Assembly: GCF_046119375.1 (NCBI RefSeq)
Contig: NW_027362769.1
Location: 374,852,001 to 374,916,000 of the forward strand
From: Phyllobates terribilis
Lineage: Eukaryota
DNA length: 64,000 nt
Direction of reading: 5' to 3'
The translations under genes and the position numbers were made by a program. A model generated the notes under the pieces. It saw nothing but the letters and a program-made list of their open reading frames with translations, searched no databases and was not told the DNA's origin. Below, one piece after another: positions 2,787 to 24,486 of this stretch; the stretch's first letter is position 1, and every line of letters begins with the position of its first letter.

Positions 2787-5700
2787 TTACTCTGCTTCCT
2801 CCGTGCTAGCAGAGCCCTGTGGGCCTTCCAGGGCTTCACTAAGCAGCTGTATCTGTCTGCTCATCTGGGAGGAGAGACTCTCGATCCTCCGCGCCTTCTG
2901 GCGCAGCTTGTGTAACTGTTTGTTGTAGGTCTCTTTTAGTTCCATGTAGCAATTGTGCTCGTCTCGGTTTGCAGGGGTCAGCAGCGCTCCGCACCCCATG
3001 TGACACGTCTCGCTCCAATACTCGCAGCTTTGGCTGTGGTCAACTATGTCTTTCCTCATCACCTGGGCAGGACATCCAGCATTGGCGCAGGGCACCAGTC
3101 CGAAACCGCATGACTCTGCGTGCTCCTCGCTCCTCAGCAGAGGGAAGAGGGCTGGGCAGCCATTCTGCTCGTTAGGACACTGATCATCAAGACAGATACA
3201 TTATGTTATAGACCTTAAAGTAGATTTATCACTAGGTATAAAATATAGATTTTTTTTTTTTTACCTGCTGTAAATGACGCGCCCCCTGGGCCGTGGGGCA
3301 CCCGGAGCCGGGCCGGTAGATGCTGGGGGTTGTAGTCACTGTGGCGGTGACCCGGTCCCTGACCCAGGGTGGTCAATCCAAGGGGATGTATAGGTTTTTA
3401 TAATGTCTGACTACGCCACCTGTGGAGTGCGGCTAAAGGGGGGGCCACCACTGCGGAACAGTCCTCTGAAGCTGGTGGTTGCGCAGCAATGATGGTATAA
3501 CTCCCCACAGGAAGAGTTAGCTTCAGGGCAGTGTGTGAGGATGATGGTGGTTGTGCTGAGCGTTATAGTGCAGTGAGGGATGGCGCAGCAAGTAACACAG
3601 AGACAAGATAGTGCAGTCCCAGGGGCTTTACTCACAGTTATTGCAATCCAGATTATAGAGCTCAATGTAATTGCCCACGTCATTCTGTGCTTACTCAGTG
3701 AGGGGCTCAGTCCACCCTCAGGTATTTCCAGAGCACTCAGCAGGACCCCTTTCTGTGTGCCTTCCTCAGCCGTCTTCCTGCGCTGGCTCTCACCCTCCTG
3801 CCCTGCGCCTCACAGTCAGTGTCCCAAGCCGGTGGCCTCGGGTCTTGGCAGGCGACCTGCAGTCCCCTGGGCCCTATGTGGCCACCTTTTTGGCGATTGT
3901 TAACTGTGGTAGGGGGCAGCTGCACCCTGAAAGTACAGCCACCTCCAGTTGCTAGTTGGACTTAAAGTATCCGTGCTAGTTAAGGGGCCGGTCCCCTCTG
4001 CGGCTTGATCCTTCCAATGTCTTGTAGATTCGGGCGGCCTCCAGTACTGCCTGTACCCCTAGGATCCCCTCGTTCCTTCCTCCTGGAGCCTTTCCTGCTC
4101 CCCTTCTCTTCTCTTCCCAGACTTGGGCCTCACTGGCCAGGCCCGCCTCTGGAGCAGAGCTCATGCAGAGCCTCTGCTCCTGGCGCTCCTCCTCCTCTGA
4201 CTGAACACTGAACTAAGATGGTTCCCTATTTTATACAGCTTCCTGTCAAGTGCTCCCAGGATCTACTTCCTCCACCCCATCCACTACATGGTTCCCCCTC
4301 TCTAGGTTGTTCCCCCCACTCCAGCCAGAGACCAGGGACTGTGCTCTCCCATAGAAGCAATCTCGCCCTGTCCCTCGGAAATGTGTAGTGAATGCAGTGT
4401 TAGGGTCCTGAGCTGTACTCCTTCCTTACCTGAGAGTGAGGTACCACACCTCTGGATGAGATGCAATACCTCTGTGGTGACTGAACCCTCAGGGGCACCA
4501 CATAAATGCCACCGTTCTCCTGAATATGGCGATGTTTTTCTTTTCTTCCTGCGCCTCTCCGTTCCTGAGATAAAGTCCTTTCTGCCCTGTGTATCTATTA
4601 TTTTAGCCAACTGGGTGTGGTTCTTCAGAACAAACCCACAGAGAAGAGTTGGGATCATACAGGTAAGAAGCCGCCATATCTCAAGAATGGAGAGGCGCAT
4701 GAACAAAAGAAAAACATCGCCGGATTCAGGAGAACAGCGGCATTTACACCAAATTAAAAAAAAAATACATATTCATGGCAAGTGATAGGTCCCGCTTAAA
4801 GTGGTTGCACAAAATTCAAGAACAAAACATGACTGCTTTCCTTCTCTTAAAGACGCACCACACCTGTTTGAAGGTTGTGTGCGGTATTGCAGTCTCTGAA
4901 AGTTCACTGGAACGGAGCCACAATACCAGACGCAATCCATGAACAGGTGGCGTTGTTTAAGGAAGAAAGCAGACATGCTTTGTGTTTCATTTCACCACCA
5001 TTTTGTAGAACTCTGCCATTAGTAACTAGAATTACCCTTGCTTACACAAAATCAGAAATTCCAACTGCTGGCACAGGTGCATGGTTCATTAAAAGGGCTA
5101 TTTCAGACATTTTGGGCCAGATTCATTATTGAATTTACACTTTTGTCCAGATTTTGTTTTTTTATTTTTGCCCATTTCTAATTGTTGCCTTTTTTTAAGA
5201 TCTATTTTATATGTATTTGCCTATTTTTTATTGTGTTTGCCATTGTGGGAAAGTTTTGGGGTTTCCAAATGTTTTTAGTTTTTTTGGCTGATCACAATTT
5301 TTTTTGCGAAGATGTACACCACTCCCCACGAAGTGATATTTTCATGTACGTCTTTTACATACGACATCTTCAGTTATGGAAGGGACACAATCACTCTCAT
5401 TAAATGATGAAGAAATCTATGGCCGCCTTCTATCCTTTACCTTGACTTGCAGACTGTTGATTTTCCTCTTCAGCTTATGCATCTGTACATAAAGTTTACC
5501 CCTCACTTCGGTTCTACAGCACGGGCAGGTCTGCTGTCTGGGAAAAGGAAGTGCAGTCAAACAAGGATTCATGGAGATGACCCCCATTGTACAGTCTGTG
5601 AGAACCATCAACAAGCTGCTGTTGATGGAGCCGATTTTCAAGTTTCCATCACAGGAAGCTCCAACAAGCTGGAGTTAACGGAGCTGGTATTTTCCACCTA

Positions 5701-7813
5701 TTTAAACCTTTAAATCAGTACTAATATTTTATGTTTGGGCTGTGGGTAGAAAAAAAGAAAAAAAAAAGTATTGAACATATGAAGAAAGAGGTACACAAAG
5801 CCCTGGAAACTCATCTCACCAGCTGAAATTATCAGTAATTAGAACGCAATCCTGCCACTTAATGACAAATTATCTCAGTGGGTTCAACTGATGGCCAATA
5901 AAAAGGTGTCTCATTACCAAGGTGCCACACAAGAAACCTCTCATGCTGGGTAAAACAAGTGAGCTGTCTCAAGACCTTCGCAACCTTATTGTTGCAAAAC
6001 ATACTGATGGCATTGGTTACAGAGGGACTTCTAAACTACTAAAGGTTCCAGTGAGCACCGTTGGGGCCATAACTCCGAAGTGAAAAGAACATAATTTCAG
6101 GATAAACCAGTCACAACCAGGTGCTACCCAGAAGATTTCAGACAGAGGAGTGAAAAGAATGATCAAGAGTTGTCCAAGAGCCAAGTACCAACTGTGGTCA
6201 GCTACAAAAAGCCCTGGAATCAGCAGATACAATTGTTTCAAAGAAAAAAGTGATGCATTCAACCTCCATGGCCTGTATGCCCGCTCCCCACGCAAGCTCC
6301 GTGGCCTGTATGCCCGCTCCCCACGCAAGCTCCGTGGCCTGTATGCCCGCTCCCCACGCAAGCTCCGTGGCCTGTATGCCCGCTCCCCACGCAAGCTCCG
6401 TGGCCTGTATGCCCGCTCCCCACGCAACCTCCGTGGCCTGTATGCCCGCTCACCACGCAACCTCCGTGGCCTGTATGCCCGCTCACCATGCAACCTCCGT
6501 GGCCTGTATGCACGCTCACCACGCCACCTCCATGGCCTGTATGCACGCTCACCACGCCACCTCCATGGCCTGTATGCACACTCACCATGCAACCTCCATG
6601 GCCTGTATGCACACTCACCACACAAGACTCCATTGCTGAGCAAAAAGCATGTTCAAAGTATGTTGAACAACATTTAGACAAGCCTGTGAAATACGGAGAG
6701 ACTATAGTCTGGTCAGAACTCTTTGGATGCCATAATACACACCAAAAGGCACTGCATATCACCCCAAAAACACCATACCAGCAAAGAAGTTTGGAGGTGG
6801 ATACATCATGGTGTTAAAATGTAATAATAAAAAAAAAAAAAAAATGTATCGAAGGAACTAAAAGCTCAGAGTTCATAGAAGGAGCCCACGGGCTCTTCAG
6901 GATGTGAAGAGTGTTTGTATGGAAGAATGGGCTAAAAATCACACCTGAGCAATGCCTGCAACTAGTTTCCCCATACAGGAGGAGTCTTGACGCTTCATCA
7001 CCAACAAAGGCTTTTGTACGAAGTATTAACTACATTTCAGTAAGTGTTCAATACTATTTCCTTGTGAAATTTCTCATTACTACACATAATTTATGGACAT
7101 CTATGGATGATTTCTTTACCCGTGTGGAGTAGATGGGTTGCTACTGACATCTGGTGAGAACTTCATGTCAACAGCACCTTTAGAAATAGGTTTACTTAGA
7201 AAATTAGTGACAAGTTCAATACTTATTTCAACCGCTGTATAAGAAAATAGAGCAGAGCTAACCAGTGGTCAGGGGTGGCATTGCAGACCTTCTCCACAGT
7301 GCATGGATGCAAGTTTGGGAAATTGCACATTTTCCGGTCACGCTTGTCCTAGTCATGGACCTCCTCACTCAAGCTGACTGATCTTACATTCTTATGACTT
7401 CTCTAACACTAGTGCATCCCATTAACCCGCTGCAGCCTTGATCATACAGAACACACCACACTGATTTTCTCACCTTTTTAGCCACTGTAAAATGCATTTT
7501 CGGCAGAAGATGTGCCCACAGGAGATCATGACGGGGCACCTGAGCACACCATGGCAGATAGAGCACAGTAGGTCGTCATCTGGATTTTCCGTAAATATAT
7601 CTAGATCGTATCCACCTCCCTGAAAGTATGGAAGCACCAGAGGCATAAGGTCATTAATAAAAGGTCAGGGGTACTGGGCAGCTATGGACACAGCATCAGA
7701 GCTACCCTGAGACCTTACAGCTATGATCATGTCCTGGCTGCCGCCGTAAAAGCACAAGTACCCACTGGAGACCTTGAATGTACCCTGGCACACGTCACTC
7801 CAGTACATACCAT
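2787..7813 (-). CDS. RNF151: RING finger protein 151 (RING + TRAF-type Zn fingers), 4 coding exons, 212 aa
   Basis: Exons 7813-7811 (ATG|gtatgt), 7619-7474 (GGGYDLDIF..CSICHGVLRCPVMISCGHIFCRKCILQWLK), 5537-5441 (QQTCPCCRTEV..LQVK), 3179-2787 (CPNEQNGC..HNCYMELK..TAA). All GT-AG, phases consistent, 639 nt total. ATG-only first exon is the least certain. Confidence 0.92.
3275..4502 (-). mobile_element. solo LTR of the same family in RNF151 intron 3
   Basis: Minus strand TGTGGTGCCCC..GGGGGCGCGTCA, TSD TAAA on both sides, 1228 bp, clearly similar to the 32845 copy. Confidence 0.9.
4515..4736. repeat. fold-back MITE-like inverted repeat
   Basis: GTTCTCCTGAAT..GCGCCTCTCC../..GGAGAGGCGC..ATTCAGGAGAAC. 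Confidence 0.65.
5820..7237 (+). mobile_element. decayed, internally deleted Tc1 element
   Basis: GKTSELSQDLRNLIVAKH N-terminal remnant, EEWAKITPEQC C-terminal remnant, right TIR ending AACCGCTG|TA at 7237. Left end approximate. Confidence 0.8.
6270..6622. repeat. 33-bp minisatellite, about 11 units
   Basis: GGCCTGTATGCCCGCTCCCCACGCAAGCTCCGT, inside the Tc1 remnant. Confidence 0.95.
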
Positions 7814-9780
7814 TGTGGTATATATGTACGCTCCACTGCCCCAGGGAATCTGTCACATTACACTTACCACCGTCCGTCCCAGTGCAGCCATCCAACAGTG
7901 GGCTCTTTCTAGATCCATGTAACATTAGTCACCCTGATCATGTGCGGCAAGCTGAACCTCCCCCCCACCCCCCCGTCACATTCCCCATACGTTCACGTCA
8001 GCATTTATTTTGGACACGGTCCTCTATTGGCACTGCAGATCAATGGGCAAATCGCTTTCTAGCTGTGTATTGTCATAAGCCCCAAAAATGCTGCACAATG
8101 CAGGACGGGAGTGAACGTGCACCCATTGTTCTGCACCGGGGTGGAAAATTGTCAAATGTGGAGTCAAAAAATAAGGCAAAAAGTTCTGTAGATAAAGTGC
8201 AACTTTATTGAAAATAAAACAATTAAACAACGCAACAAGTATCGAAACCTACTGTAAAATTCATACATATGATAAGGACCTGCAGAAAGGAGAGGAATGT
8301 CAAATATAGTTTAGGTCCATTCATACATATGAGAAGTCACAAATCAGACTCTGGGCATAGTGGGCAATAAGTGACTACTTTTCCAGGATCAGAAAATATC
8401 AGCTCTTATATTACATTACCTTGGACAACTACTTTGACTCCTAGCTTTTTGGACTTGGGAGCCAAAGTATAGCATTTGGTCACTACACTAAAGGAAGTAG
8501 TTTTATACAGAATTTTGGAGGGGACTGTTTTGTCATTCTGTAGATTCTCTGACCTGATGATCAAGATATCACAATTTGGTCTTGGTCAGTCATTCAGATG
8601 CTCTCACTTGGGTCATTCATCTAGCTTCCGTCACACTTACGAGCTGACTATTCATTTACTGCCCCCTATATACTTAACATTGAAATTGCAACACCAGGTA
8701 GTGTTGCGTGAACATGCTCAGATAAGGCGTTAACCGAGCGCACGCTCAAGCCCTAACCGAATATCTTCGGCATGCTCGCAAAATAAGTCTGCATGTCTCG
8801 AGTCTGTCAAACAGCCAGGAGACATGAAGCCACTGCGACGCGAACATATTTTGCGAGCACACCGAAGGTACTCTATTAGGGCTTGAGCGTGCTCGGATAA
8901 CACTTTCTCCAAGCAGGTTCGCGCAACACTAACACCAGGAAGTAAAAGTTGTGGAATTATGGAAACAAGTTAATGATCTGCAAATGGTGAAAAACAGGAA
9001 ACAAAATTTCTGAATTTATTCCGTCTGGAATATGAGCACCATGTGCAAAAATCCCAGCACTGAGGTTTATTAATTGTCTTTTGAGAATGGTTCTACACTT
9101 GGGCAAATCATCAAAATCTGTTGCTAGCAGTTCCTGTGTAATCACCGACCAATGGCATCCCAGATCATTCGATGGGAGACAAGTCTGGAGACGCTGCAGC
9201 CATGGGAGCACGTTTAGGCCACGCAGGCTGCTCACAGTAGAGGGGCACTGACTATATAGCTAGCAAAATTACGTATTAATGTTACTGAGCCAACAAGGAC
9301 TGAATCAGACATACATACATAAAGCTTGCTACTAAATTAGTGACAACTACAGAGCAATAGCAAATATAAAGCTATGGAACAAAATAAAATATTTTATCTG
9401 GTTTTCAAGTGCCTCCCACAGATTGGAGCTTAAAAATGCAATTCTTTGCAGATCTTACCAACGATTTCCGTAACCCTACAACTGGTCCTTCTTGGTGTTG
9501 CTATTTCAATATTAGGAGGGGATACAGTCATTATCGAAAGTGGACACAGACTGTTGTGAAGAACCAAACCAACATGCTGAACTTTTTTTTTTATTTAGGA
9601 CACAAATAAGTCTGCGGCTACTGCTAATACACACAACCATGGGCCTTACAGCAACTTATAATCAGTAGCAGGTAATCAAATTCACATAATTTACTGCCAT
9701 ATATATACAGCAGTAAATCATAATGCTCCTGTTATTCAGCCTTAATTACAGATACATTGATGAACAGAACACATATGCAG

Positions 9781-9940
9781 TAGGATGCCCCCAGTCCTCC
9801 TCACACACAGTAGGATGCCCCCAGTCAACCCCACACACAGTAGGATGCCCCCAGTCAACCCCACACACAGTAGGATGCCCCCAGTCAACCCCACACACAG
9901 TAGGATGCCCCCAGTCAACCCCACACACAGTAGGATGCCC
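9781..9940. repeat. 30-bp minisatellite, 5.3 units
   Basis: TAGGATGCCCCCAGTCAACCCCACACACAG. Confidence 0.95.
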
Positions 9941-10185
9941 AAACTACTGATAAAAAACGCATCTTATTCCATTACCCCAATGCCTTGCAGCGTGTGGACT
10001 GAGACTGCACAGCAGGCACAATAATGACGTCATCGTATCTGCTGCTGAATGGCGGCACAGGGAGCTAAATGCTCCCTCTTCTGTTCCACCATTGAATTCA
10101 CCTGCATCCTGAGGACCAAGGCGACATTGCCCAGGTGTGTTTTATGGTATACTGAAATACAATTAAACCTTTATTGACAAATGCA

Positions 10186-11220
10186 TCAAGTTTCAGCAGA
10201 GACTGAATATTTACAATGTTGTCCCTTATTTTTTAAGACTTCTGCAATTCGCTGGGGCATGCTAGATATCAGTTTCTGGGCCAAATCCCGAGTGCTTGCA
10301 GTCCATTCTTCCCTAATCAGTGCTTGGAGTTTATCATAACTTAAATCTTTTTGTTTGTCCACCTGCTTTTTGAGGATAGACCACAGGTTCTCAATGGGAT
10401 TAAGATCTGGAGAGTTTCCTGGCCATGAACCCAGAACTGCAATGTTTTGCTCATCGAGCCACTTAGTCACCAGTTTTGCCTTATGACATGGTGCCCCATC
10501 ATGCTGGAAAATGCATTGGTCATCACCAAATTGTTCCTGGATGGTTGGGAGAAGTTGCTCTTGGAGGAGGGTTAGATACCATTCTTTATTCATGGCTGGG
10601 GTCTGAGGCAGAATTTTAAGTGAGCCCCCTCCCTTGGATGAAAAGCAACCCCACACATGAATGGTCTCAGGATGATTTAATGTTGGCATGAAACAGGCCT
10701 CAGGGAAGCTCTCACCTTTTCTTCTCTGAAGCATCATTCTTCCAGATGCTCCTAAAAGTCTAAAAGAGGCTTCATCGGAGAAAATCACTTTCCCCCAGTC
10801 CTCTACTGTCCAATCTCTGTACTTCCTGCAGAACGTCAGTCTGTCCTTCATGTTTTGCTTAGTGAGAAGTGGCTTCTTTGCTGCCCTTTTAGTCACTAAA
10901 CCAGCCTCCAAAAGCCTTCTCCTCACTGTGCGAGCAGATGCACTGACTCCTGCCTGCTGCCATTCCAGGGCAAGCTCTGCACTGGTGTTAAACTGCTCCT
11001 CTTGCTGAATCTTCTTTAGGAGACTGTCCTGGCACTTGCTGGTCTTTCTTGGACGCCCTGAAGCCTTCTTCGCAGCAATTGAACCACTCTGTTTAAAGTT
11101 CTTGATGATCCGATAAATGGTTGATTTCGGGGCAATCGTACAAGCGGCAATGTCCTTGCCTGAAAATCCCTTTTGATGCAAAGCAATGATGTCTGCACGT
11201 GTTTCCTTTGAGGTAACCAT
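10186..11220 (-). CDS. open Tc1-family transposase, DD35E (Traveler-type), 344 aa from ATG 11220
   Basis: Paired-like HTH, GRPRK, FSDE, VWGCFS, FQHDGAPCH..SPDLNPIE with 35 residues between the second D and E. Degenerate TIR at about 11480-11501; no matching TIR seen at the other end. Confidence 0.9.
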   Translation of the reverse strand: MVTSKETRADIIALHQKGFSGKDIAACTIAPKSTIYRIIKNFKQSGSIAAKKASGRPRKTSKCQDSLLKKIQQEEQFNTSAELALEWQQAGVSASARTVRRRLLEAGLVTKRAAKKPLLTKQNMKDRLTFCRKYRDWTVEDWGKVIFSDEASFRLLGASGRMMLQRRKGESFPEACFMPTLNHPETIHVWGCFSSKGGGSLKILPQTPAMNKEWYLTLLQEQLLPTIQEQFGDDQCIFQHDGAPCHKAKLVTKWLDEQNIAVLGSWPGNSPDLNPIENLWSILKKQVDKQKDLSYDKLQALIREEWTASTRDLAQKLISSMPQRIAEVLKNKGQHCKYSVSAET

Positions 11221-11717
11221 GGTTATCAAAAGACAATGATTTCATGCTCCATATTACAGCAACCATCAGCTGCCTTGTCCTAGCTGACACTTTCTCCTGA
11301 GCCACGGAGTAGATCACTGGAGTGATGTAAGCAGGTCATTTTGTGGCAGGGAATGGGTTTTGCGATAAAGGTTATTAATGGAAAGGAATGACAATATTTT
11401 TTTTGCAATTCAACTGATCGCTCTTCAAAACAATCTGGCCACAATCAAAAATGAAGCACCAAAAACAATTTGTCAGTCTCAATACTTTTGATCAGAACCC
11501 TATATACCACCTCTGACCGGCTCCATTGTCACAAGATAATCCGTGTTATTAACTTTATCCATAATGTTAACACCTCTGCCAGGTGATCGCTGCACATTCT
11601 TCTAGTTCAGCTTCCACAAATTCGGTCTCAACACGAGGACTAAAATAAGAGAAAACAGGAGGTTAGTTAGTGCAAAGTCATATGTGGCACCCACAATCCA
11701 GGCATGCACAGCCAGAC

Positions 11718-11850
11718 AAATGTAGGAGCACGGGTCTCATTACAAGCATACAGATTATGGGTAATGAGCTAAATGCTCCTATTCCTATAGGCACAGAGAT
11801 CTTACTAAAGGCTACAGAAGAGGCCAGAAGCAATTTTCAGTTTGTGCCAA
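11718..11850 (-). ncRNA. SNORA78: H/ACA snoRNA, SNORA78 (ACA64)-like
   Basis: GGCACA..TGTGCC hairpin, H box ATAGGA, AGGAGCA/TGCTCCT plus CTCATTAC/GTAATGAG hairpin with pocket, then ACA+3 nt; about 133 nt. Pocket motifs TGAAAAT.GC, GT.AGAT, AG-CTCA and TGA.ACCC resemble human SNORA78 as recalled; syntenic position. Confidence 0.8.
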
Positions 11851-12034
11851 AGTGACTATGCCAATATTGTCCAATACAAGTCATCACCTGACTTCCAAGT
11901 TCTCAGCCTACAGCAAACATCCTGCCTATACCCCCTACCCTGGGAGCCCAGCCTATGCCATATAAACCCCCACCCTGGGAGCCCAGCCTATGCCATATAT
12001 ACCCCCACCCTGGGGGCCAAGCCTACACCATATA

Positions 12035-13670
12035 CAGTTATATGAACAAGTTTGGGCACCCCTATTACTCTTAAGCTTAATGTTTTATAAAAATTGGTGT
12101 TTTTGAAACAGCTATTTCAGTTTGATATATGTAATAACTGTTGGACACAGTAATGTTTCTGCCTTGAAATGAGGTTTATTGTACTAACAGAAAATGTGCA
12201 ATCTGCATTCAAACAAAATTTGACAGGTGCATAAGTATGGGCACCCTTATCATTTTCTTGTTTTAAATACTCCTACCTACTTTTTACTGACTTACTAAAG
12301 CACTTTTTTTGGTTTTGTAACCTCATTGAGCTTTGAACTTCATAGCCAGGTGTATGCAATCATGAGAAAAGCTACTTAAAAAGTGGCCACTTGCAAGTTG
12401 TTCTCCTGTTTGAATCTCCTCTGAAGAGTGGCATCATGGGCTCCTCAAAACAACTGTCAAATGATCTGAAAACAAAAGATTATTCAACATAGTTCAGGGG
12501 AAGGATACAAAAAGCTGTCTCAGAGATTTAACCTGTCAGTTTCCACTGTGAGGAACATAGTAAGGAAATGGAAGAACACAGGGACAGTTCTTGTTAAGGC
12601 CAGAAGTGGCAGGCCAAGAAAAACATCAGAAAGGCAGAGAAGAAGAATGGTGAGATCAGTCAAGGACAATCCTCAGACCACCTCCAGAGAGCTGCAGCAT
12701 CAACTTGCTGCAGATGGTGTCACTGTGCATCGGTCAACTATACAACGCACTTTTCACAAGGAGAAGCTGTATGGGAGAGTGATGCAAAAGAAGCAGTTTC
12801 TGCAAGCACGCCACAAACAGTCGGCTGAGGTATGCAAAAGCACATTTGGAGAAGCCAATTTCTTTTTGGAAGAAGGTCCTGTGGACTGATGAAACCAAGA
12901 TTGAGTTGTTTGGTCATACAAAAAGGCATTATGCATGGCGGCAAAAAAACACAGCATTCCAAGAAAAACACTTGCTACCCACAGTAAAATTTGGTGGAGG
13001 TTCCATCATGCTTTGGGGCTGTGTGGCCAATGCCGGCACCGGGAATCTTGTTAAAGTTGAGGGACGCATGGATTCCACTCAGTATCAGCAGATTCTTGAC
13101 AATAATGTTCAAGAATCAGTGACAAAGTTGAAGTTACGCAGGGGATGGATCTTTCAGCAAGACAATGATCCAAAACACCGCTCCAAATCTACTCAGGCAT
13201 TCATGCAGAGGAACAATTACAATGTTCTGGAATGGCCATCCCAGTCCCCAGACCTGAATATCATTGAACATCTGTGGGATCATTTGAAGAAGGCTGTCCA
13301 TGCTCGGCGACCATCAAACTTAACTGAACTGGAATTGTTTTGTAAAGAGGAATGGTCAAAAATACCTTCATCCAGGATCCAGGAACTCATTAAAAGCTAC
13401 AGGAAGCGACTAGAGGCAAAAGGAGGATCTACTAAATATTAATGTCACTTTTCTGGTGAGGTGCCCAAACTTATGCACCTGTCAAATTTTGTTTGAATGC
13501 AGATTGCACATTTTCTGTTAGTACAATAAACCTCATTTCAAGGCAGAAACATTACTGTGTCCAACAGTTATTACATATATCAAACTGAAATACCTGTTGC
13601 AAAAACACCAATTTTTATAAAACCATAAGTTTAATATTAATAGGGGTGCCCAAACTTTTTCATATAACTG
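12035..13670 (+). mobile_element. Tc1 DD34E element, IR/DR type, frameshifted transposase
   Basis: 211-bp TIRs (12035-12245, 13460-13670), TA TSD, 1636 bp. Transposase from ATG 12435 is split over frames; QDNDPKH..SPDLNIIE = D34E. Confidence 0.93.
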
Positions 13671-14130
13671 TATACCCCTCCCCCACCCTACGCCATATAT
13701 ACACCCCCCCCCTCACCCTACGCCATATATACACGCCCCCAACCCTGGGGGGCCCAGCCCTACGCCATATATACGCCCCCTCCCCCACCCTGGGGGGCCC
13801 AGCCCTACGCCATATATACGCCCCCTCCCCCACCCTGGGGGGCCCAGCCCTACGCCATATATACGCCCCCTCCCCCACCCTGGGGGCAAAGCCTACGCCA
13901 TATATACGCCCCCCTCCCCTACCCTGGGGGGCCCAGTCTACTCCATATATATTACCCCCCCCCCACCATGGGGGGCCCAGCCTACACCACATATACCCCC
14001 CCCCCACCCTGGGGGGCCCAGCCTACGCCATATATACCCCACCCTGGAGGGCCCAGCCTATGCCATATATACCCCCCCACCCCTGGGGGGGTCCAGCCTA
14101 TGCCATATATTACCCCCCCCCACCCCAGAG
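13671..14130. repeat. C-rich 38-44-bp minisatellite (also at about 11925-12034, split by the Tc1 insertion)
   Basis: GGGGGCCCAGCCTA(C/T)GCCATATATACCCCCCACCCT units. Confidence 0.85.
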
Positions 14131-14150
14131 GGGCCCAGACAGCAAATATA

Positions 14151-16431
14151 CAGGGTGATCCAAAAGTAGGTGGCCAGAAAATAATAACATTTATTTTGAT
14201 TTATATATAAAATTATATTTACTAACACAGGCATAAGGCTATGTGCCCACAATGCAGAAATGCTCAGGATTTTTCTGCATCTCCCTGGCAGAAAAAAACG
14301 CATGCGGATTGTACATGCGTTTTCCTGCCAGGAACATTCGGAAGTGAAGCGTTCTCCACTTGCATTTCCACATGTGGGTTGTCAAGCGCTTTCCAAGCGA
14401 TTTTATCACCTGGAAAGTGCTTGACAACTTGGTCTCACTATATAAACCCATGCAAAAGGCATGGATTTATATAGTGTGACCGAAAGAATGTCAAAAAATA
14501 AATAAATATATACTTACCCTTCGATGGCCCCCGGAGTCTTGCTTCGCTTGGTCCCGGCTGCCGGCAGCGGTGGATTGAAGGACCTGCCGACGTCAGTGTC
14601 GTGTGACCCGTCACATGACTGACGTCAGCGCAGGTCCTTCAGTCCATCGCGAAGTGCCGGGAAGCAAAGAGGAGCGCAGTGCGGGCCGCCAGAAGGTAAG
14701 TATATATTTATTTTTTATTTTATTCTTTTTTTACAGCTTTTTTAATGGGACCTGGGTGTGGATGAGACTCTCCTCTCCTCTACACCCGGGTACCATCCGC
14801 ACATTAGAACGCGCCAATTACACAAGTACAGATGCAGTCTTGAGGAATTGGTGCGTTCTAATGCAAGTCAATGGCGGCGAAAACGCAGCACTTCTGCAAA
14901 ATAATTGGTAGTGCTGTGTTTCTTCCGCAATGATAATCCGCAGCGGAAATTTCCGCAGCATGTACACAGCACATGCAGATTATCATTGGGGAACATGGCA
15001 GGCCTTCTACCATGCGTTTTTGCCGATGCGGAAACGCTTAAAAAACGCATCGTGGGCACACAGCCTAACACTGACAATTACATTTTATTCTGAACAATAA
15101 TACAAAAGCCCTTCAATTTTACCAACGCAGGCGCTCACACTGTTTTCCATTACAATTTGCACAGCTTTGAAGTCGCCTCTTACGCTTCAACAAACTTTTC
15201 TGCACAAGTCTCTTTGGGTGTTAATTTCTTGAAATGCATCTCTTATGTAATTTTTCAAATCACTGACACTTTTTGGTTTTCGACTATAAACTTTGTCCTT
15301 GAGTACTCCCCAAAAGAAAAAATCCATTGGGGTCAAGTCCGGTGAACGTGCCGGCCAATCAAGTGTGCCTCTTCGGCCAATTCATTTATTAGGAAATGTT
15401 TCATCAAGATACTCGCGGACCACTCTTGAATAATGTGGAGGGGCCCCATCTTGTTGGAAATAAAGGTCATTTGAATTAGGCTGTTGCTGTAACTGGGGAA
15501 CAACTTGATTCATCAGAATTTCAAGATACTTATCTCCTGTGACTGTTCCATCAAAAAATATTGGTCCTAAAACACCAAAACTTGAAATACCACCCCAAAC
15601 ATTGACACCAGGCTCATTTAGTTGTGGCTCTAATGTTAAATGCATGTTCTCATTATACCAGTAAATACAATTATGTCTGTTAATATGGCCGGAGAATGGG
15701 AAAGAAGCTTCATCACTTCACATCATGTTATCTAAAATTACTGGATTTTCTTCAATTTCGTTAAGCATAATCTCACTAAATTGCAGCCGCCTGTCTGGAT
15801 CATCCTCCAATAAACCATGAATTAGATGTGGACGATCAGCTTCCACCCAATAGATTTCAGGATTCGCATGATAGAAGCTCGTGAAATTCCCAATTCCAGA
15901 GAGTTTCTTCTGGTGACTTTTTTGGACTGTGAACAAATCCTTCAGCAACAAGTTGTTTATTATCTTCTGTACAGACGGTTTTGGGTCGAGCAGTTTTTGG
16001 AGCATTAAGGATTGAGCCAGTGGCATTGAATTTGTCACGAATGCGGTAAATGGTTTGTCTCTTTGGGGCTTGAGCACCAAATGTTTCAACCCAATTTGCT
16101 CTAACGGTTTCAGCATTTTGAGATTTCCAATACTCTGTTAAAATCCATTTTCTTTGATCTGTATTTAAATTATTTGCCATTATGTGTTATCTGAAAAGAA
16201 AACAGATTTGGGGGAGATCTATCTGTGAAAACTAGATCTGTGAAACTGGCTCAGTTGCCCTTAGCAACCAGATTCCAGATTCCACCTTTCATTTTCCAAA
16301 GAGTCCGTGAGGAATGAAAAGTGGAATCTGATTGGTTGCTAAGGGCCAGTTTCACTTTACACCATGTTTGATAAATCTCCCCCATCATAACCGTATTACA
16401 CTTTCTGTCCACCTACTTTTGGACAACCCTG
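14151..16431 (-). mobile_element. decayed DD41D (Visitor/rosa-type) Tc1/mariner element with nested MITEs
   Basis: TIRs CAGGGTGATCCAAAAGTAGGTGG / CCACCTACTTTTGGACAACCCTG with TA flanks. Fragments QQDGAPPHY..WPARSPDLTPMD (41-residue spacing including an in-frame stop); HTH at 15857-16180. Confidence 0.88.
14237..15065. mobile_element. PIF/Harbinger-type MITE
   Basis: TAA|GGCTATGTGCCCAC..GTGGGCACACAGCC|TAA: 3-bp TWA TSD and terminal inverted repeats; nested in the DD41D element. Confidence 0.8.
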
Positions 16432-16929
16432 TATTTATATTACACACCCCTCCACCCCAGCCTGCACAGCTTGCCTATAAGCCCCACCCTGTGTGTCCAT
16501 AGTATACCATAGATCCCTCCAACACAGAGGTGCCCAGACATCTCATCTATATCTGTAGTGCAGCACTATACAATGGCAGACACAGATAGAACAGGGCTCC
16601 CGTGCTCTATGGGCCCTTTGTAGTGCAATAGCTCATCAAAAAGCAAATTGCCTCCAGTTTTGGAGGTCGTAGTGGCCCCCTGACCGGTTATACCAATGGT
16701 TGGTCGACCCCTGCACTATATACACTCCTATCCCAGAGGTGCCCAGCCTCCAATACTACAGATATAGCTATATATACCCGCACCATTACACTCCATACAA
16801 CACACATTGTTACCATTTCCAGTAAAGCATGTAAAAAAACAAACTAACTGCTCCATACACTAACTACTATTACCCCCATCATCCCTCCTGCAGAGTCTCA
16901 CCTTCCCCACGAGGCTCAGGCAGTACAAA

Positions 16930-17110
16930 AAGGATCCTCGCTGCCAGGGCGCCTCCTTTTATAACTTCCGGCTACACGCCTTTGACGTGACGTCATTACC
17001 ACCCAAATCTATCTGCGCATGCTCGTTGTAGAGCTCCAGCTCTCGCGCTGTTTCGCGGGTATAAGAAGCCTCTTCCGCCGGTTTCCGCCCTTCTAGTCTA
17101 TCGACATCAC
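16930..17110. promoter_or_regulatory. bidirectional RPS2 / SNHG9-like promoter
   Basis: Back-to-back TATA-like boxes (minus 16963-16957; plus TATAAG 17060), each about 30 nt from a pyrimidine start. ETS/GABP ACTTCCGG 16964, CRE TGACGTCA 16988-16995, NRF1-like TGCGCATGC 17014; CpG-rich. Confidence 0.75.
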
Positions 17111-17506
17111 GTAAGTGACTGCAGCCGGCGTGAGAGCGAGGGGAGGCCGGGTAGTAATCCGCGGACATCGGGGCCATCCCGCCCGTGCGGCCGCTTGTAT
17201 TGGGGTCGTATGAGAGTGTGTGAGCGGGTGGCTGTTTCCATGGTGATATTAGTGGGGGTTTCGCTGTAGTTGTGGCGCGGCCTCAACTGTGCCCGGCGGG
17301 TCGTTGTCTGTTTCTATTAACCCTTTACAATACCGCTGCTTGTTGTCAGTGACTGGATGGCTGACTCCGGTAATGAGGACCATGTGTTTGTTACTGAAGA
17401 CCACCCTGAGTCTTTCCTTACAATGTATCACTATAAGGGGGATGGGGGTTCATCCTTCTATAAACTCTTTGATCCTCAATGATCTAAATTTATTTCCTTG
17501 CAGCAA

Positions 17507-24486
<6,980 letters not shown>

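Follow-up and report, generated by a model that had tools for sequence, protein, structure and literature searches.

Traveler elements are DD35E transposons of ~1.5 kb whose transposases measure 338–350 aa and whose short inverted repeats end in CAGTC or CAGCC and are accompanied by a TA duplication (PMC7093834). In the account of Zong et al. (2020, PMC7093834), the family occurs in fishes as well as in four anurans and two squamates. Here, we report a copy on the minus strand of a 64-kb stretch of DNA from the poison frog Phyllobates terribilis (the window, 64,000 nucleotides, to which all positions refer). Judged by its sequence and its place in the protein tree, this copy belongs to the described Traveler (DD35E) family, of which it is a divergent new member. 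We consider it likely that window positions 10133–11500 hold a clipped, immobile, low-copy, and divergent Traveler relic that has been exonised in an SNHG9-like RNA with its reading frame still open, and the relic is most likely moderately young. The features of the locus are collected in Table 1.

Table 1. Features of the transposon copy and of the surrounding host locus, in window coordinates
Feature	Position	Strand	Remarks
DD35E transposase ORF	10186–11220	−	HTH, GRPR, HTH, D149, D241, E277; stop codon included
Traveler 5′ UTR	11221–11470	−	Several deletions; holds 4 of the 7 upstream ATGs
5′ inverted repeat remains	11471–11515	−	Inner 20 nt match the family; outer 10–12 nt degenerate
Clipped 3′ UTR	10133–10185	−	Family AATAAA at 10175–10170; ~80 bp including the 3′ inverted repeat gone
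Non-transposon part of putative terminal exon	11516–11639	−	Without canonical poly(A) signal
3′ splice site: branch point, pyrimidine tract, AG	11640–11670	−	Read from the sequence
ACA64 (SNORA78-type) snoRNA	11718–11845	−	Rfam RF01225; intronic
Putative exon 1, SNHG9-like host gene	16902–16933	−	CCTTTTTG start, donor AAG/GTGAGA
RNF151-like exons	2787–3095 (zf-TRAF), 5417–5641 (RING-like cysteines)	−	Downstream, on the host-gene strand

Results

A divergent Traveler transposase with an open frame

The ORF encodes an uninterrupted Tc1-like transposase of 344 aa when read from its ATG (1,035 bp with the stop codon), or of 347 aa if an upstream TTG is taken as the alternative start. The ATG lies in a good context, ACCATGG. 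Pfam models matched by the protein are HTH_Tnp_Tc3_2 (1.7e-18) and DDE_3 (3e-12), as well as HTH_23 and HTH_SB. The N terminus has the order HTH, GRPRK at residues 55–59 (GRPR at 55–58), and HTH, and a nuclear localisation region reads KRAAKKP at residues 111–117. The catalytic triad consists of Asp149, Asp241, and Glu277, with 35 residues separating the second aspartate from the glutamate, and all three columns are conserved in an alignment of 32 family sequences. The preliminary description, which had been made from the letters of this DNA, had the coordinates of the open 344-aa frame and its D-D-35-E signature right. In the window copy, the family's TGA stop codon has become TCA, and the C terminus gains six residues.

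In a maximum-likelihood tree, the ORF falls inside the Traveler clade with a support of 100/97, together with the Salmo salar founder and with carp and Umbra TR proteins, and it is sister to a "core" clade of fish and frog sequences. Its private branch measures 0.26 amino-acid substitutions per site, compared with 0.003–0.1 for intact core-clade members in the same tree. The top protein matches are fish Traveler-type transposases at 71–75% identity, a Salmo salar "transposase-like" protein among them, and a Ranitomeya imitator copy shares 69% identity with the ORF; the divergence of the protein from every Traveler sequence found is at least 24%. At the nucleotide level, the CDS is 83% identical to L001, a fish contig from Logan in which the UTR and poly(A) signal remain recognisable as counterparts, and the copy shares 77% DNA identity with full-length frog-type copies, L002 from Ranitomeya and L006. 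The tegu TR-Same consensus, of which ~400 nt are printed, shares many derived 5′ UTR and N-terminal states with the window copy when the two are compared by eye. By this resemblance to the printed part, the nearest kin of the window copy appear to lie in an already described Traveler cluster.

The Ranitomeya imitator copy in L002 deserves a remark of its own. It is a full-length Traveler (L002:22540–24160, from CAUEEQ010011991.1) that has CAGTCATGG... at both ends and a TA duplication and whose frame is shifted once, and it has been annotated within a 538-aa gene model that spans 20 kb; this model is probably a chimeric annotation.

Damage at both ends of the element

The inner part of the 5′ inverted repeat is kept at 11490–11471 (CAAAAGTATTGAGACTGACA), where 19 of 20 positions match the family by eye. 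The outer 10–12 nt are degenerate: positions 11500–11491 agree with the family end CAGTCATGGC at only 4–5 of 10 positions, and even L005, a distant outgroup, still carries this outer end. On the other side, homology to five full-length relatives ends at ~10133, ~80 bp short of their 3′ termini. The UTRs have suffered as well, the 3′ UTR by a 22-bp deletion and the 5′ UTR by several deletions that shorten it relative to fish and Ranitomeya elements and, by eye, to the tegu element. With the 3′ inverted repeat lost and the outer 5′ repeat degenerate, the window copy cannot be excised as a unit or move by itself. Both the degenerate repeat that the preliminary description had placed at about 11501 on the same strand and its view that the copy is immobile for want of a second repeat are thus borne out, the former with an inner part that can still be recognised.

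We also considered that the element might be complete and still mobile, its inverted repeats having simply escaped recognition. A candidate for a displaced 5′ end, CAGAGGTGG at 11515–11507, has 7 of its 9 positions in common with the end of the family, but the 64-kb window offers no partner for the 5′ repeat: pattern searches of the window found no reverse complement of the 5′ repeat and no family 3′ end, local alignment of the 3′ flank with reference 3′ ends gave a score no better than that of shuffled sequence, and a TA duplication is absent at the copy. A hidden 3′ inverted repeat was therefore rejected. As the homology to full-length relatives halts well before their 3′ ends, the notion of a mobile element is, short of a misassembly at ~10133, already refuted by the missing 3′ end, and we regard it as next to impossible. 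The inverted repeats ending in CAGTC or CAGCC and the TA duplication that mark a Traveler are not found in the window copy, and their absence is damage to this copy and not the sign of a different family.

Beyond the clipped end, a 30-bp minisatellite of 5.4 copies with 97% identity occupies window positions 9778–9940, ~200 bp past the 3′ end of the element.

A probable snoRNA host gene next to RPS2

The 5′ end and protein start of RPS2 lie on the plus strand at ~17060–17640, and Rfam places SNORA64 at 21303–21439 (+) inside an RPS2 intron. On the minus strand of the promoter side, a TATA-like box at 16964–16955 is followed ~29 nt on by a 5′TOP-like, pyrimidine-rich start (CCTTTTTG, ~16933). 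The donor AAG/GTGAGA opens an intron of 5.26 kb at 16901, and this intron holds the ACA64 (SNORA78-type) H/ACA snoRNA, a full-length match to the Rfam model at 78.5 bits (gathering score 35, E 1.3e-14). The acceptor lies 79 nt past the snoRNA and comprises CTAAC twice at 11670–11662, a pyrimidine tract, and TAG at 11642–11640, so that the exon would begin at 11639. The strong acceptor leading on the same strand into the transposase that the preliminary description had pointed out is indeed present, with the branch-point motif occurring twice. A permissive Rfam scan of positions 8500–17500 found no second snoRNA downstream of the element, and positions 11516–11639, between the acceptor and the 5′ repeat remains, are without Traveler homology.

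The snoRNA, the donor and acceptor, and the 5′TOP-like start at a bidirectional promoter together describe an SNHG9-like snoRNA host gene, with the use of these signals being what we infer from the DNA. The order RPS2–SNHG9(SNORA78)–RNF151 at human 16p13.3 is matched by that of the frog locus. Most plausibly, then, the window copy sits in the last exon, and on the same strand, of a 5′TOP snoRNA host gene that diverges from RPS2.

The host intron contains broken Tc1/mariner copies at 12479–13439 (+), with a frameshift, and at ~15160–16180 (−), in several frames. Both belong to other families, with 29–34% amino-acid identity to the Traveler ORF, and one carries a DUF4817 HTH domain. Three broken Tc1/mariner neighbors had been reported for this region; these two could be confirmed and the third could not.

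Several further sequences of the locus are recorded here as side observations. An exact 14-nt match, GGAGCATTTAGCTC, occurs on the minus strand both in the 3′ hairpin of ACA64 (11766–11779) and in the flank past the clipped transposon end (10062–10075). In the flank, the matching sequence folds into a perfect 6-bp stem (GGGAGC/GCTCCC). The match goes no further than these 14 nt, and its score was reached by none of 500 shuffles. A palindromic hairpin at 16259–16344 gives weak scores on both strands to mir-4650 and mir-605, far under the gathering scores, and is probably a transposon inverted repeat rather than a microRNA. Finally, the stretch from the transposon relic to the RNF151-like exons contains a 33-bp tandem array of 11 copies with 95% identity (6260–6625), several frames of which are open.

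Polyadenylation signals and leader

Past the acceptor, the minus strand carries the poly(A) hexamers ATTAAA at 10681–10676, AATAAA at 10590–10585 (inside the ORF), and AATAAA at 10175–10170, the two AATAAA being those that the preliminary description had listed within and after the ORF. Between the acceptor at 11640 and position 10681, there is no A[AT]TAAA, so a transcript that uses this acceptor must enter the transposase gene. The hexamer at 10175–10170 is the Traveler family's own conserved poly(A) signal and not a new feature. It is therefore probable that the bulk of the last exon of the putative host RNA consists of the relic, which would also supply the poly(A) signal.

Seven upstream ATGs fall in the leader (11638–11221), and two of them open frames of 57 and 50 codons that overlap the main start; short upstream ORFs ahead of the ATG had been given earlier as a caveat. 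With so many upstream ATGs and two overlapping frames, efficient translation of the ORF from a host transcript is unlikely.

Selection on the ORF

We measured selection by pairwise and three-point distances and by Tajima relative-rate counts. Between the window ORF and L001, which lies almost at the root of the core clade, dN/dS is 0.31 (dS 0.41, dN 0.13). A value clearly below 1 on a private branch as long as this one would fit a transposase domesticated by the host, a possibility that the preliminary description had raised. On that reading, purifying selection for a cellular function would have kept the frame intact after the termini were lost, together with the HTH domains, the GRPR motif, and the full DDE triad, and expression of the protein would be driven by the SNHG9-like/RPS2 bidirectional promoter or by a promoter in what is left of the 5′ UTR. 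The pairing of immobility with an intact ORF that this reading calls for is found in the window copy. Pairs of ordinary Traveler copies, however, give dN/dS values of 0.20–0.36, so that the window ORF is no more constrained than mobile copies are. In the relative-rate test with L005 as the outgroup, 42 amino-acid changes are unique to the frog protein and 10 to L001 (p = 9e-6), while third codon positions are even in the same test (26 in the frog vs 22 in L001). An amino-acid excess of this kind with even third positions means that the frog lineage has been under relaxed, not tightened, constraint. Taken with the dN/dS, it shows that purifying selection beyond that of mobile relatives is not found in this ORF.

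The positions at which the protein has changed bear on a further possibility, that the copy is an immobile but active source of transposase whose translated ORF mobilises other Travelers while the host gains nothing. All of the catalytic and DNA-binding motifs that such a source would need are present, the start codon stands in a good context, and the inner inverted repeat of the copy itself resembles that of the frog Traveler type L002. Among 86 family positions that are near-invariant (at least 95% conserved), however, the frog protein is altered at nine; intact relatives are altered at 0–6% of the same positions, and decayed copies resemble the frog in this. The frog substitutions are for the most part conservative; they include K182N in the conserved TVKHP motif and P152S beside the first catalytic aspartate. 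Amino-acid identity to L002 is also only 69–72%, and the upstream ATGs and overlapping upstream frames would stand in the way of translation here too. Selection at the level of the transposon cannot, moreover, keep an immobile copy, and any activity would be short-lived. On balance, we think a transposase source of this kind improbable.

The noncoding parts of the copy speak to how long it has been at its site. K(5′UTR)/dS is 0.57–0.86 for pairs that involve the frog copy and 0.57–0.81 for pairs of mobile lineages, and the number of indels per unit K in the UTR is likewise comparable. Since both measures are the same as in mobile lineages, the copy gives no sign of long residence at its site. 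For the same reason, we dropped the contrast between the deletions in the UTR and their absence from the ORF as an indication of selection on site. CpG depletion was considered as a clock and set aside as uninformative: the observed/expected ratio of CpG is 0.24 in the ORF, 0.30–0.33 in relatives, and 0.15–0.32 in the flanks.

Relatives and the age of the insertion

A search with the whole ORF among ~15 billion proteins, in which annotated frogs and one poison frog are included, returned no protein more than 76% identical to it. A search of ~15 billion proteins with the N-terminal half, which would also catch fragments, likewise found nothing above 76%, and a scan of metagenome contigs yielded only core-clade Traveler copies and no closer relative. 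The protein collection thus contains no assembled product of this ORF, a slight hint against its expression. Neither the protein collection nor the metagenome contigs contain sister copies or paralogues of the window lineage. This is compatible with a single-copy host gene, and it also means that recent mobility of the lineage is here an assumption.

These searches weigh differently on a domesticated gene and on a young relic. Had the long branch been gained at the present site under selection, annotated hyloid frogs should share so old an insertion, and no orthologue above 76% identity was found there or elsewhere among the ~15 billion proteins. A young insertion would instead have come after the branch was formed, and its open frame then needs no special explanation. 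The position of the ORF on the sense strand of a likely housekeeping transcript favors expression of a host gene, but the seven upstream ATGs in the leader tell against it, and the ORF has neither been fused to host exons nor acquired a new domain. With selection no stronger than among mobile copies, constraint relaxed, UTR decay that does not indicate long residence, and an AATAAA inherited from the family, we judge a host-domesticated transposase to be quite improbable. Of the earlier interpretation, the immobility of the copy and its sense orientation in a probable last exon of the host gene hold, and the further move to domestication is not supported.

Discussion

The account that we favor is that of a clipped, immobile relic. 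A Traveler copy would have inserted on the sense strand, ~125–140 nt past the start of the last exon of the frog SNHG9 counterpart, the ACA64/SNORA78 host gene on the bidirectional promoter shared with RPS2; the loss of the 3′ end and of the outermost bases of the 5′ inverted repeat would have followed. The differences that set the copy apart from other Travelers would have accumulated while the lineage was still mobile, and too short a time as a neutral sequence is the most likely reason why the frame is still open. In this sequence of events, the relic would give most of the terminal exon, with candidate polyadenylation signals at 10175, 10681, and 10590. The ORF would seldom be translated from the host transcript, and no function for the host is indicated.

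Two considerations run against a relic. An intact frame of 1,035 bp is not what one would expect of an old, neutral relic with both termini gone. Likewise, if the amino-acid excess had arisen by neutral decay on site, at ~3–8% divergence, the frame should usually be broken.

To our knowledge, no domestication of a Tc1-type (DDxE) transposase has been established in a vertebrate. Domestication of a Traveler (DD35E) specific to poison frogs and expressed through the housekeeping SNHG9-like/RPS2 promoter, doubtful as we hold it to be, would if true be the first such co-option as far as we know. Were the ORF kept at its site across species, a coding frame carried on a noncoding housekeeping transcript would also be an unusual route of expression. 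As it stands, the copy has little significance: it adds a divergent, clipped member to a family that has already been described in frogs, and it offers an example of a transposon relic that probably forms the end of a snoRNA host RNA, as commonly happens to such elements.

Comparison with known systems

Domesticated transposases of the Tc1/mariner and pogo groups, such as SETMAR (PMC7386202, PMC13548663), resemble the window copy in that an immobile ORF occupies a fixed site. The known cases are marked by orthologues across species, dN/dS values well below those of mobile relatives, and documented expression, and often by fusion to host exons or loss of catalytic residues; the window copy has a dN/dS within the range of ordinary Traveler copies, no orthologue above 76% identity among the ~15 billion proteins, a full catalytic triad, and no fusion to host exons.

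With Traveler (TR) elements, the copy shares the DD35E spacing, a transposase of ~340 aa, the HTH/GRPR/HTH arrangement with a nuclear localisation region, the conserved layout of the UTRs with their poly(A) signal, and membership of the clade in the protein tree. It departs from them in its lack of CAGTC or CAGCC ends, of a 3′ inverted repeat, and of a TA duplication, as well as in the six-residue C-terminal extension that follows from the lost stop codon and in its protein divergence of at least 24%.

The surrounding locus resembles SNHG9/SNORA78 in that a short noncoding host gene diverges from RPS2, carries ACA64 in its single intron, and has RNF151-like exons downstream. The frog intron differs in its length of 5.3 kb and in being full of broken Tc1/mariner copies, and the transposon relic appears to make up most of the frog terminal exon. 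In that respect, the locus comes close to transposon-derived terminal exons of lncRNAs. The coding frame of the exonised element is still complete here, an unusual state but an uninformative one when taken alone; as in those exons, a sense element lying just past the acceptor gives the first canonical poly(A) signals.
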